DNA from: Dendrobates tinctorius
Taxonomy: Eukaryota
Direction: 5' to 3'
NCBI RefSeq assembly: GCF_039654945.1
Contig: NW_027361832.1
Coordinates: 10,602,001-10,666,000 of the forward strand
Length of the DNA stretch: 64,000 nt
Position 1 is the stretch's first letter. Every line of letters begins with the position of its first letter. Positions 52,201-58,200 of this stretch are shown one piece after another. The notes below the pieces were generated by a model. That model did not search any database, was not told the origin of the DNA, and worked only from the letters and a program-made list of their open reading frames with translations. The position numbers and the translations under genes were made by a program.

Positions 52201-55200
52201 TGACACTTGACTTACTTTTATATCTTTGATCTTCTGTTTTTCAAAATTGTCAATGGTTTCCTCCAGCTGGCGACTTATTCTAGCTGCATCCATCGTCGCT
52301 CGCTGTAGTTCCGTTTCAGCCTTAAACACAGACATTCGAGCGGTTCATAATCCTCCATCGCTATAGAACGGCCCCCTGATATTACACTGCTGTGGGTACA
52401 AGCGTGGTACCCCAGATATGGCCCCTTTAGAAAGCAGATTGACAGGGGTGCGAATAACTGGACCCTCAATGATCTGAGGAAAAGCCCTGTAAATCTCATG
52501 GAGTCCTTGTCCTCCGATACCCTAAAAGGGTAAACTCTTACTGACTACTATCACTCTCTCCATAAGCAGGAATGACGGGCGTGAGACTTCCCTGCACCCT
52601 GTGAGGACCAGCGCTATGCCTTACACACAGCAGTAAGGGTCGTCTGTTAATAATATTCTCTGCAATATGAAACGCGAGTGATCTGAAGCCCAGGCGTACT
52701 AGACAACCTAAAGGGGACGTCCAGTTAAAAAAAAAAAAAAAGACTTCTACTATCCAGTGCTCCGATCTCCAGGCATCAGCACAGTCCTGGGTCCCAGTAC
52801 TTTCCTGACCCAAGTTTGACGTCGGCCCATGATTCACGCTGTGTGTAGGGGGCTGACTGCTCTTTATCAATAGCTAAGCCAGACCCCTTCTCTGTCTGTG
52901 CATCGGCTGTGACGAGGGGGAGGGGGGGGGGAGGGGGGGGGGGGGGGAACGACTCGGATATTGGAATGGGCAGTCAGATTTTAGGGTAAAACTGTGGTTG
53001 TTCACGCGCAAGATCTGAAAAGCTGTCCGTCCTGTCCCAGAGATTTCACGACGTTGATGCAGTTTATACCTGGGACTTGGATCTGGTCAAGGAAAAAGCA
53101 AATTACTTTCATGCCTAGATTTTGTCACACTACGAATCAATGGGGCGGATGTTCTGCACTAGGGTGTCTGCCACCTTTTAAGCTGCCACTGTTATAGCCT
53201 TAACCCCTTACTGTTACAGCCAAATCTTTATTTTAGCTTTTTGTTTTCGTCATTATCTTCCAACTTTTTATTTTTGTGTGAAAATAGTTGACTGAGGCCT
53301 TCACTACTCCGCACCCAGCATGAGACATACATGTACGTCACATCTGGAAGCGTTAGAGGTTTTCCCATCTCCAAAATCTTTTCCAGATATGTTGTAGGTA
53401 TAATAAAAATACTAGCAAATTTAGTACAGTTCTTCTGATTCGCTATTTTGATCACCCCAAGTGCAGGGCATTGCAGGAGATTAGGTATCCATGGTTAGGT
53501 ATCCATGGTTACGACCACTCATATAGAGACAGTTCGTGGTCGTAACCATAGATTTCTAAGCTACTGCATTGCCCTGCACATGGGGTGATCGACATAGCGA
53601 ATCAGAAGAACTATACTACATTACTAATTTAAGGTATTTAGTAATATGATTAATTATTATTAACCTACTACATATTGGGATAGCATCTTGGAGATGGAAA
53701 TATCCCTTTAAAACCAACTGGAGGTAAATATCACAAAAGTTATATGGCTGGGTTGGAAATTGTGAGTGAAGTGCAGCTAAATGTAAGCATTAGCCTGCTT
53801 TTTGACGCAGTTGCGTCACACGATGCCAGAAAGGCCATACGGCTGGATTTCATTCTGCTGATGTGACACTATTTATGGCAACCTGACCATAGCCTTTAGT
53901 AAACCTATGGGAACATAGAGGTAGACCAGGCCAAAAAGCCCACCATATTAAGGAATTGCTATTTGTGGTACGTGGACATGATGGATTTTTCAGATGGATT
54001 CAGCCCAGAATCCTCCTGAAAAAGCAACGCAAAACCACCTCATAAAATGACCATAGTGCACCATGTTCACAGAAAGCTGCCAGTCAGATGTGGGCGGGGT
54101 TATACACAGCTCAGCATTCAGAGCTCTGCTACATCTACAGCAGAGAAAACAGGGATTCTATCAAAACTGCACCAAGCAGCCCAGTAAGTTATGCATCGCT
54201 GGAATCAGGCTCTTTTGCCCCTACATCATGCTCCTCTCGGATTACATAGCAAAAACCTGTTGACCGATTCCCTTTAATCCGCTAAGTGTATCAATTCCTT
54301 CATCGCAGTTTTAACGTGATCAGGCACTGGAAAATCCGGCCCTGATCATGTTCCTTGGAATCTCAGTTACCAGCCAACTCTGACTCTGGAAAATCTCCGG
54401 GGTCTCGGCTACCGGGGTTAGCCGAGACCCCCGAGAACATGATCAGGGTCGGATTTTCCTGTGCCTGATCACATGTTGGCCGTTATTCACTGATCACAAA
54501 AATGATTTCTTCCTCTTCTGACATGTCAGAGGAAAGAAAAAAAAAAAAAAAGATGCCCCCGGAGACCCCCTGACACCTCCGCCATGCCAGGGCCCTCCTG
54601 ATCGTCCCGAGGTCATCTTCCTGAAGGAGAAAAAAAATAAATAAATAATTGGCGGGCGTGCCGGCCGGCCCCAATAGGAAGTTTTTCCTAATGGTTTCTT
54701 TTGATCACTATGATAGGGTCTATCACAGTGATCAAAAGAAAAAAATAGTAAATCAAATCCCCCTTTGTCACCCCCTTAGTTAAAAAATATAAAACCTTTT
54801 TTTATTCTCTCTATTCTTTGCAGTTAGGGTTAGATTTGTTTTTTTTTAAATTTTTTTCAAAAGTAAAAAAAACAAAAAAAACCCCACAACATGACGGCTA
54901 GAGTTGAACGCAAGTGCTCGCTACTCATGTTTGCATCGGTGCTCAGGTATGCACAGAGTATTGCGGATCCCGCATGTCTCTTTTTGGGTGTCTAACAGCT
55001 GCAAAACATGTCACTAGAGGTCCCGCGATATTCAGTGCATCCCAGAGCATGCGATGCAAACAGGAGCAGCTGAACGTCTTTGTGCTCAACACTAACGACG
55101 ACATACTCAACATGACGACCTAATGTTATTGAATTCTTTGTGATACCTGTGGGTTCAAATTGCTCACTATACCCTGGGATAAAATCCTTGGGGGGGGTGT

Positions 55201-58200
55201 TAAGTTTCCAAAATGGGGTCAATTGTGGGGGGTTTCCACAGTTTAGGCACGTCAGGGGCTCTCCAAACGCAAAATGGCGTCTGCTCTCGATTCAAGACAA
55301 TTTTGCGTTCAAAAAGTCTCCTTCCTTTCTGAGCCCTGCCGTGCGCCCAAACAGTAGATTTCCCCCACAAATAAGGTATTGTTGTATTCAGCAGAATTTG
55401 CACAACAAATTTTGGGGTCCATTTTCGCCTGTTACCTTTGTGATATTAAAGTTTGGGTCAAAAGTAAATTTTTGGTGAAAAAAAATGTTTTTTTTTTTCC
55501 ACATTGTTTCAGTTCCTGTGAAGCACCTGAAGGGTTAATAAACTTCTTGACTGAGGTTTTGAGCACCTTGAGGGGTGCAGTTTTTTTTTTGGTGTCACAT
55601 TTGGGTATTTTCTGCCATACAGACCTCTCAAACTCCCTTCAAATGTGAGGTGGTCCCTAAAAAAAATGGTTTTGTAAATGTTGTTGTAAAAAATGAGAAA
55701 TTGCTGGGCAACTTTTAACCCTTATAAGGTCCTAATAAATAAAAATTATGCTTAAAAAATTGTGCGGATGTAAATATAGACATGTGGGAAATGTTATTTA
55801 TGAACTTTTTTTTGGGCGATATGACTCTCTAGTTTAGGCTCTTAAGAATTAAAAGTTTGAAAATTGTGACATTTTTCAAAATTTTTCGCCAAATTTCCGT
55901 TTTCTTCACAAATAAACGCAAGTTATGTAGAAGAAATGTTACCACTATCGTGAAGTAGGAAAAAACTATTTCAGAATCACTGAGATACGTTGAAGCGTTC
56001 CAGAGCTGTAAACTCATGCAGTTTATATCATGAAATACATAAATGGAAAGAAGGATACGATGATTTGCCGATCTGATGGGTTTCTCTGACGAGTTCTCTC
56101 TAGCTGCGCCATCTGCTTCGCTTCTCTGTTCCTGGCACTTAAAGTTACTTTCAGATCTTCCTTTAAAAAAAAAAAAAAAAAAGTTTTCTTAACACAAGCT
56201 CACCTAAGCATCTCTCACTATGGACATGAAGCTTTGATTGTACCAAGGGGGCCGATTTGAATCTTTGCTTGTTTTCCTTGTCTAGAATTTTTTTTTTCCA
56301 TTGTATTTTTTAGTCCCCCTATGGAACGTGAACCTGCAATTTCCTGATCACCTGTATCGTAGACTGCAATATATGGTGAAAATCATAGCCTCCTATGAAG
56401 CCCAACCTATGCCTCGGCTTCACAGATGTACCAGATAGCTGAATGAGGACTTTCAGAAGTCGGGTAGTGTGAGAGGTTAGCAGCACCCGAACAGACGGCT
56501 CAGTTTAAATACAGTCAGAGATGGATAGCGGCATTAAAGGTTTGTCCATTACCTGGACAACCTCTTCTCAATCCCCATATTCTCCCCCAGTAAAATATTA
56601 ACACCTATACTCCCTTATGCTGCCGTTCCTGGTTTGTTGGTGGTTCTCCCGGGGCTCACATGACTTTGTTACGTCATGCAATCGCTGTGGCCAATCTGCG
56701 CTGGCTTCACTCTCCTCTCCTTTAGACAAATCACACCATCCGGAGGACGTGAGAGGACAGCATCAACTTCCACTTCGTCTGGATCTCAATTACAAATGTC
56801 AATGTTACAGTTATGTCACGAAAGCCCAGGGAGAGCCAGTGCCAACACCGCTAGAACAGCACCGCCACCATAGAGGAGTATAAGTGTTAGTATTTTACCG
56901 AGGTGACACTGATTAAGAAAAGGTTGTCCCGAGTAGTGGGCAATCCCTTTAAGCCAGCGACTGGAGCAGGCTCAGATTGCTGCTGTTAGAGGCTGATGCC
57001 GGCTGTATAACACATGCAGCACCTACCCTGCTGTGTGGAGCGTGCTCTGCTGAGCTCATTCCACACACCCACACCGTGACATTATAGTAAACCATGTGGT
57101 GGGAAGTTGATGATGTCCACTCATCCACCCACACGTATACACTGAAGATACAATGGACATACTCACCCTTTTGTGCTTGATTATCGCTCCGTAGCTTTTC
57201 AGAGGTTCAATTACTTTGGCTTCAAGTCTTTCCACCTGACAAGAGAATTCATATCTTCAGTGAACGAGGACCTTTATTGTCACCACGAGCCCTTGTACTG
57301 TATTCGGAGTGCAGATGTTCTGCAGCATCAGTTACCAACCATTCCCGCCATTACACAATCTCCATATACAATCATGAAAGCACGAGCCTATGGGATGTAT
57401 TCTCTGTATCGCTGAGGTTAAAGCAGTCTCCTCCACCCATGATTTAGGGCCCAGCAACATGTCTATTTTAGGTCAGTGGTGCAGAACCTGGAGCCCAGGT
57501 CCCTTGTGGCCCACAGTGCTATTCTGGTCAGAAATGTTCTTCTCTCTGTCTGTTCACATGTATTTCCTTGTTACACAGGAATGACACATAGAAATGGGCA
57601 GGAGCAGGCAAGTACCAGCTGTACAGAATGTGGCCATCTCTGGGACCCCCATATATAAGAAGGATGGACCCCCGTGTGGCAGTGGCACTCCAGTTAGCAG
57701 TAGAGGAGGTGGAGAGGTGACCACTCGTGTTGCCACCTACATTCTAGTTTTATGGTAGTGAAACAATCGGCTGTTACCAAACTCCTAAACTGCAACGGAG
57801 AGAACCGAATCCAGGCATGGTCTTTTGAATCGAGGTAGAAAGGCAAAATTTTTCTGAAAATCTGGAGTCTTGGAAGAAAACAGCACCCATCAGACACAGC
57901 ATATACTTTCAGTATGACAAAAATGTCTTAAGCCCCCATACAAGTTACACTAGTGTCAGTCGGAGCTGCCGATATCGAAAGGTTCTAATGTGTAAGAATC
58001 CAACATGACAGACTTTAGACTCCGAGATAAGCTACCGCCAGAGATCTCTGCTAGCAGCTCTCTAGAGTGCTCCTGTTTATCGAAGAGACGGTCTAGATAG
58101 ATGCCATCTGAATGACAAGTTGAATCATCAAATGGCTGACAGCCATCTAAGGTGTATAAGGGCCTTTAGATTATGACCCTATAAAAAGTCTATCCTACAA

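Follow-up and report, generated by a model that had tools for sequence, protein, structure and literature searches.

The DNA analysed here, called the window below, is a 64-kilobase (kb) stretch of 64,000 nucleotides (nt) from the frog Dendrobates tinctorius (assembly GCF_039654945.1, contig NW_027361832.1, positions 10,602,001 to 10,666,000), and the subject of this analysis is an exon of only 6 nt, TCCCAG, in the gene CIBAR1, also known as FAM92A, which lies on the minus strand. We consider, with a probability of roughly 0.88, that positions 53075-53070 are exon 5 of CIBAR1, included in every transcript contig seen, that this exon supplies the Ser-Gln pair of the BAR domain between ...SDRQII and AETELQ, and that it is placed between a U12-type intron upstream and a U2-type intron downstream.

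The CIBAR1 gene and its six-nucleotide exon

The gene hosting the microexon is the CIBAR1/FAM92A orthologue. Searching with the exon 2 peptide (phmmer) returned 215 protein matches, the names among them being CBY1-interacting BAR domain-containing protein 1, FAM92A or CIBAR2/FAM92B; matches named CIBAR1/FAM92A had E-values down to 2e-29. Identity in exon 2 reached 86%, and the named proteins among the closer matches (about 74-86%) were CIBAR1/FAM92A; named CIBAR2/FAM92B proteins stood lower, at about 56-61%. Within the FAM92/CIBAR BAR-domain family (PF06730) the frog gene is therefore nearer to CIBAR1 than to CIBAR2. Fish and bat CIBAR1 queries aligned with exons 2-9 (tblastn), and the remaining exons were positioned from the listing of open reading frames (ORFs) and from these alignments. 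The exon numbering of an earlier note, made from the letters of this DNA, is correct.

The splice signals around the microexon are distinctive. Exon 4 ends in ...AGAAACCCATCAGATCGGCAAATCATC (CGG CAA ATC ATC) with its last base at 56059, and from 56058 it is directly followed by GTATCCTTC, which agrees with the U12-type 5' splice site RTATCCTT. Some 3 kb further down the minus strand comes the sequence ...tgctttttCCTTGACcagatccaAG/TCCCAG/GTATAAactg, where slashes mark exon-intron boundaries. In this segment TCCTTGAC agrees with the U12 branch-site consensus TCCTTRAC, which is expected some 10-15 nt upstream of the 3' splice site with no long polypyrimidine tract; here the branch A (53087) is 12 nt from the first base of exon 5, and the pyrimidine run before the 3' splice site of intron 4 consists only of CTTTTTCCTT, overlapping the branch motif. 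The GT of intron 5 (53069-53068) comes directly after exon 5, and exon 6 starts at 52320 in the context tgtctgtgtttaag/GCTGAAACG (acceptor tttaag), with no TCCTTRAC in the intron 5 sequence upstream of this acceptor. All three junctions are in phase 0 and the product reads RQII-SQ-AETELQ. The earlier note had described a U12-type donor with a branch site 12 nt before the microexon, followed by a U2-type intron; we found the former exactly, as GTATCCTTC and TCCTTGAC, and the latter in the form of a weak GTATAA donor and an exon 6 acceptor devoid of a U12 branch site. Judged by consensus match and orthology, intron 4 is a GT-AG U12-type (minor) intron.

That intron 4 might instead be removed by the U2 machinery despite its U12-like motifs is very improbable. 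Its GT-AG termini and the short pyrimidine run before the 3' splice site speak for such a removal, but ATC/GTATCC pairs with U1 at +1 to +3 only, and the 8-mers of donor and branch site are conserved from abalone to vertebrates in introns whose length varies from 97 to 3082 nt. Moreover, in mammals the orthologous gene requires components of the minor spliceosome (PMC12750831; bioRxiv 10.1101/2022.11.10.516037).

Such an arrangement of motifs is rare in the window. AGTCCCAGGT occurs once on the two strands of the 64 kb, for an expectation obtained by shuffling of 0.11 per 128 kb, or about 0.003 for the 3.7-kb sense intron. AG/TCCCAG/GT is unique within the window; TCCCAG itself stands twice in the intron, and only the copy at 53075-53070 carries both AG and GT flanks. 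On the minus strand of the window RTATCCTT is found four times and TCCTTRAC twice, with one of each located exactly at in-frame exon boundaries.

The inclusion of the exon in mature RNA was examined with Logan contigs from four runs of four studies, belonging to coded organisms A and B, over the region 52050-57300. The RNA type of these runs is a guess of the tool and no run is recorded as RNA, but the contigs can be taken as transcripts because they contain the spliced joint itself. Each of the four runs has a contig in which 52322 is connected to 56059 through GGGA. The two plus-strand bases at 52321-52322, complementary to the acceptor AG, are CT, so that the aligner assigned two letters of the insert to exon 6; the actual content of the contigs between exon 6 and exon 4 is CTGGGA, the reverse complement of TCCCAG. 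The junction ...CAAATCATC-TCCCAG-GCTGAAACG, which had been put forward as the RNA read to look for, is present in all four runs, so that the 6-nt exon encoding Ser-Gln, as first proposed from the letters, is a real component of mature transcripts. With 6 nt, AG and GT flanks and presence in mature mRNA, it falls well within the limit of about 27-30 nt applied to microexons. No direct joint of exon 4 to exon 6 appeared among the joints listed for the four runs, contigs being known to lose rare forms.

The contigs also delimit the neighboring exons. The exon 6 pieces cover 52216-52322 in the four runs and end at the predicted donor, 52216. Those of exon 4 cover 56059-56154, again in the four runs, and stop six bases before 56160, where the acceptor is expected. 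A run of A at 56161-56186 adjoins exon 4, and the stop at 56154 fits the masking margins that surround homopolymer runs, seen likewise at 52719-52753 and 52907-52954; most likely, this stop is a masking artefact of the adjacent A-run and not the true start of exon 4. Finally, a 285-nt contig of organism B (53056-53341) differs from the window at 14 positions, all at 53120 or higher, and the 64 nt containing the branch site, the microexon and the donor are identical.

Could the six bases come from elsewhere, through another site, a 4-nt exon combined with a displaced acceptor, or an error of the assembly? We regard this as scarcely conceivable. The aligner did place CT in exon 6 and listed GGGA alone, which makes a 4-nt insert formally possible, but an exon TCCC would require an acceptor two bases upstream, where the dinucleotide is TA and not AG. 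The other intronic TCCCAG has no splice flanks, the contigs of four independent studies agree with one another, and five other genomes have the same 6-nt exon with its flanking signals at the corresponding position. The other copy, at 55179-55174, was considered as a source and rejected, being flanked by tttta and gg in place of AG and GT; an extension of exon 4 or exon 6 that would provide Ser-Gln is ruled out by the sequence. Ser-Gln encoded at another site was among the findings that the earlier note had named as fatal to its proposal; the intron has only one TCCCAG with splice flanks. We also rejected a conserved RNA hairpin masking the microexon: GTCCCAG (53076-53070) is complementary to CTGGGAC (53040-53034), located 30 nt downstream, and their pairing would enclose the weak donor of intron 5, but the z-score is only -1.96, and no comparable pairing was present in five other species.

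Table 1. Exons, introns and splice signals of CIBAR1 in the window, and the orthologous junction in other genomes (slashes mark exon-intron boundaries)
Feature	Position	Strand	Basis and remarks
Exon 2 core, 65 residues	58444..58638	-	ORF list, phmmer, tblastn; upstream extent to about 58683
Exon 3, 23 residues	57167..57235	-	Sequence, tblastn; flanks cag/GTGGAA ... AAAAGG/gtgagt
Exon 4, 102 nt, 34 residues	56059..56160	-	3' end by transcripts; 5' end inferred (aaag/GAAGAT, homology)
Intron 4 5' splice site GTATCCTTC, U12-type, GT-AG subtype	56050..56058	-	Sequence
Intron 4, 2983 nt, U12-type by sequence	53076..56058	-	
U12 branch-site consensus TCCTTGAC within TTTTTCCTTGAC	53086..53093	-	Branch A at 53087
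Intron 4 3' splice site AG	53076..53077	-	Sequence; agrees with transcripts
Exon 5, 6-nt microexon TCCCAG (Ser-Gln)	53070..53075	-	Contigs of four runs; AG/GT flanks
Intron 5 5' splice site GTATAAAC, weak U2-type	53062..53069	-	CAG/GTA matches U1; +4 to +6 off consensus; not U12-type
Intron 5, 749 nt, U2-type GT-AG	52321..53069	-	Acceptor tgtctgtgtttaag, upstream without TCCTTRAC
Exon 6, 105 nt, 35 residues, then gtaagt	52216..52320	-	ORF list, sequence, contigs
Exon 7, 38 residues, 5' end approximate	51013..51129	-	ORF list, tblastn
Takifugu CIBAR1			Donor ATT/GTATCCTTTTTC; U12 intron 100 nt; TCCTTGACcagtccttcAG/TCTCAG/GTGTGT
Cynoglossus (tongue sole) CIBAR2-like			Donor GTATCCTTCTTT; U12 intron 660 nt; ttttcttgacacatcctatcAG/TCTAAG/GTAAGG (Ser-Lys)
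Myotis (bat) CIBAR1			Donor GTATCCTTTGAA; U12 intron 3082 nt; ttcctttatgacaaatttcAG/TCACAG/GTGGGT
Haliotis asinina (abalone)			Donor GTATCCTTGTCT; U12 intron 422 nt; cTTCCTTGACagagtcccAG/ACACAG/GTAAAT (Thr-Gln)
Tubulanus polymorphus (nemertean)			Donor GTATCCTTTATC; U12 intron 97 nt; aTCCTTGACagatattttcAG/ACCAAG/GTAAAT; microexon predicted

Several repeats accompany these features. In intron 4, the summed contig depth is very high over 53458-54337 and 55042-55921, up to about 74,000 at 55218-55393; many contigs of 90-95% likeness lie there, and these are abundant transcribed dispersed repeats (e.g., 55042-55745). Intron 5 contains a long C-rich run, of about 45 nt on the sense strand (52907-52954), and a 15-nt T-run (52727-52741), both treated as repeats. 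Outside the exons described, ORFs resembling fragments of Tc1/mariner-type transposases are present on the plus strand at 48536-49753, in a downstream intron of CIBAR1, and on the minus strand at 60898-61800, upstream of exon 2. Finally, a G+C-rich, minisatellite-like tandem array lies upstream of the gene at about 62900-64000, with overlapping ORFs on both strands whose translations repeat ...GAGCRMLGAGCRM....

Conservation of the junction and its footprints in proteins

The same junction was read in seven other genomes, giving eight loci in all, which are related by descent. In Takifugu, Cynoglossus, Myotis, Haliotis and Tubulanus the donor GTATCCTT follows the orthologous codon, and at all the loci with a separate microexon the branch A is 12-14 nt from the exon. 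The supposition that the layout is not specific to the frog was well founded: it exists in Takifugu, in the CIBAR2-like gene of Cynoglossus, in Myotis and in Haliotis, and it is predicted in Tubulanus. The two remaining loci are organized differently. In Lingula, the donor is GTATCCCTTTTG and the 3' end is gCCCTTAACatgtctcccAG/TCCCAGGCAGAGACAGAG, so that a U12-like intron leads directly onto Ser-Gln-Ala-Glu-Thr-Glu and there is no second intron. The crayfish Procambarus (CAGATT/GTAAGTAC...ttcag/GTAATTGCCGAG) has a single U2-type intron (GTAAGT) at the same position, and its next exon begins with the two codons.

By parsimony, these loci indicate that both introns are older than the split between CIBAR1 and CIBAR2, and that they probably predate the separation of protostomes and deuterostomes. 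On the same reasoning, the downstream intron would have been lost in Lingula, and in crayfish the loss of the downstream intron would have been accompanied by a switch in the type of the upstream one. The spacing of 6 nt between the two introns would then be explained by the great age of both.

The proteins carry footprints of the junction. We aligned 56 representative family members, one per 50%-identity cluster, a choice that is biased towards odd models. About 20 of them have a dipeptide at the junction (SQ, YQ, TQ, PQ, SK, SR and others), which in CIBAR1 as in CIBAR2 mostly ends in Q or K, corresponding to a CAG or AAG codon before GT; about 11 have none. Some 10 run on into aberrant sequence, and five of these begin with Val-Ser-Phe or Val-Ser-Leu, which is the translation of GTATCCTT; a Branchiostoma isoform is one such read-through. 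In a few representatives exon 3 is joined to exon 6. One protein, P0022, which looks human and has an Alu-like tail, passes directly from exon 3 to exon 6 (KMKR/AETELQ) and is an example of the isoform that lacks exons 4 and 5. Limulus (P0119), Branchiostoma (P0094) and Octopus (P0126) are represented by protein footprints only, as distinct from locus sequences. The reference proteins of many species hold the dipeptide, which means that the microexon is part of the gene models behind them.

Two models could be compared with their genomes. In that of Myotis davidii (P0007; GCA_000327345.1) the flanking exons are joined with no Ser-Gln, and the genome has the 6-nt exon at 11429-11434 of locus L004; in the Tubulanus model XP_074645786.1 (P0114) the flanking exons are likewise joined, with a genomic 6-nt exon at 4822-4827 of locus L007. 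Both unannotated exons have a U12 branch site and a GT donor, and the two models are likely annotation misses. The warning that gene finders overlook this exon is thus justified by the Myotis and Tubulanus models, which do not have the residues, and by the several models that translate GTATCCTT. Many public models misread the CIBAR junction or stand for other isoforms: in about half of the 56 representatives the two residues are missing or translation continues into the intron. The junction is useful as a test for microexon-aware annotation, the U12 signals pinpointing the exon.

Certain points weigh against the assignment of exon 5 and of its two flanking introns. The RNA status of the Logan contigs is guessed, and since rare isoforms are dropped from them, minor skipping is possible. 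The U12-type call for intron 4 is based on a consensus match and orthology, and the branch sites of bat (TCCTTTAT) and sole (TTCTTGAC) are off consensus. The microexon of Tubulanus is a prediction that the NCBI model does not contain. As for the evolutionary scenario, only parsimony separates loss from parallel gain of the second intron, and the loci compared are bilaterian.

Probable splicing of the two introns and a possible coupling with the microexon

The anatomy described above suggests how the exon could be recognized. The U11/U12 di-snRNP (a pair of small nuclear ribonucleoproteins) would recognize the 5' splice site of intron 4 together with its branch site, across the intron, the AG located 12 nt past the branch A would serve as its acceptor, and U1 would read the CAG/GTA of the weak GTATAA donor. 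The two introns would be removed in two separate reactions, and once the first had taken place the six bases would sit in an exon of normal size, of 108 nt if intron 4 goes first or of 111 nt if intron 5 does. The downstream intron may be somewhat more likely to be removed first. This order is favored because of two points, namely that minor introns are reported to be generally slow to splice and that the 6-nt exon of troponin T, discussed below, offers a precedent. Among the partly unspliced contigs (X1, 52293-52658; X5, 53056-53341), none combines a spliced junction with an unspliced one.

As the only U12-type 3' end sits on the microexon, the minor spliceosome would have no way around this exon. 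If minor splicing failed, the major spliceosome would join exon 3 to exon 6 and exons 4 and 5 would be skipped, with an in-frame loss of 102 + 6 = 108 nt, as reported for mouse; it is because the downstream exon has only 6 nt that the failure product would skip both exons together, resulting in an in-frame deletion of 36 residues of the BAR domain. CIBAR1 is a minor-intron gene in human and mouse, depends there on SCNM1 and U11, and has both flanking exons skipped when minor splicing fails (PMC12750831; bioRxiv 10.1101/2022.11.10.516037). In SCNM1-mutant human fibroblasts its transcripts are down by about 70% (PMC12750831), and the expected escape from exon 3 to exon 6 fits this fall of the canonical transcript.

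The earlier note went further and proposed that the microexon is an obligatory adaptor, which bridges the U12 donor to a U2 acceptor, with an ordered splicing and a rate-limiting step for a ciliogenesis gene. The obligatory adaptor did not hold as worded: Lingula, where TCCCAG is fused to the next exon, and crayfish, with its single GTAAGT intron, do without the microexon, and since both make the same coding sequence with no separate 6-nt exon, the microexon is not a required adaptor. The functional reading as a whole, an obligatory adaptor whose ordered, slow and rate-limiting splicing tunes the output of CIBAR1 and with it ciliogenesis, seems unlikely to us. It draws on the fact that the only U12-type 3' end is on the microexon while the acceptor of exon 6 has no U12 branch site, on the strong reduction of CIBAR1 mRNA and protein when SCNM1 is defective (PMC12750831), and on the maintenance of the layout over a very long evolutionary time. 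However, the U12-like intron of Lingula ends directly on TCCCAG-GCAGAG with no second intron, and the crayfish gene, with one GTAAGT intron, works without an adaptor exon. Sensitivity to loss of the minor spliceosome is common to many minor-intron genes and needs no microexon, and intron positions are generally conserved in slowly evolving lineages, so that persistence alone is no evidence of function.

The dependence could also run the opposite way: with their high information content, the U12 branch site and 3' end, recognized across the intron by the U11/U12 di-snRNP, would be what makes constitutive inclusion of a 6-nt exon possible, and this dependency would in turn have frozen the type of the intron. 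We hold this possible but doubtful. Six nucleotides do not suffice for exon definition or for exonic enhancers, the donors that follow the microexon are weak in many cases (GTATAA, GTGTGT, GTGGGT), the six loci with a separate 6-nt exon all have a U12-type intron upstream of it, and the sole locus with a U2-type intron, that of crayfish, has no separate microexon. On the other hand, the loci are only eight and related by descent, Lingula keeps a U12-like intron with no microexon, and microexons between two U2-type introns exist elsewhere. We retain only tentatively, as a minority possibility, a mutual dependence of U12 intron and 6-nt exon, through which the intron type and the microexon would both have been frozen since the bilaterian ancestor. 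If this were true, CIBAR1 would be a natural test case, at minimal distance, for how the two spliceosomes make contact, and changes in minor-spliceosome activity would affect its output to an unusual degree.

Comparison with known systems

The minor-intron status of CIBAR1 is not new, intron 4 being the orthologue of a known mammalian minor intron, in the same gene and at the same position after ...SDRxxI; bat CIBAR1 has the same GTATCCTT donor, followed by the same 6-nt Ser-Gln exon as here. What the present analysis adds is modest: an explicit description of the succession of U12-type intron, 6-nt exon and U2-type intron, and the depth of its conservation. The mammalian CIBAR1 papers found make no mention of a 6-nt downstream exon or of an extent reaching a mollusc. 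A literature search returned no paper pairing CIBAR1 or Fam92a with 'microexon', and FAM92A1 together with U12 gave only incidental matches. The locus also has a link to disease: in mammals, the lost expression of CIBAR1 is, with that of other ciliary genes, brought forward to account for ciliopathies of the minor spliceosome.

The layout is that of the exon-bridging model of 2021 (PMC8034651; review PMC8329584), in which a U12-type 3' end faces a U2-type 5' splice site across one exon and the loss of the minor spliceosome leads to skipping of flanking exons. Exon-bridging models assume, however, exons of ordinary length that carry bridging factors, whereas the exon has 6 nt here and the U12 branch site is about 13 nt from the U1 site. 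Neither the exon-bridging study (PMC8034651) nor the review on cross-talk (PMC8329584) discusses very short exons beside minor introns.

Other very short exons provide a second comparison. The neuronal SRRM4-dependent microexons (3-27 nt) are regulated by tissue, have U2-type flanks and use intronic UGC enhancers. Like them, the exon of CIBAR1 is very short and easily missed by gene finders and aligners; in contrast to that kind, it was present in four of four runs, with no skipped form among the joints listed. Another parallel is the 6-nt mini-exon of chicken cardiac troponin T, reportedly found by Sterner and Berget in 1993 to be recognized as an exon-intron-exon unit. Both are internal exons of 6 nt that are not definable alone, the troponin T one being reportedly spliced stepwise, as would be the case here. 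In troponin T, however, both flanking introns are U2-type, whereas in CIBAR1 the upstream one is U12-type. With about 13 nt between its U12 branch site and its U1 site, this junction is a natural substrate for asking whether the two spliceosomes can fit at once and in which order they act.

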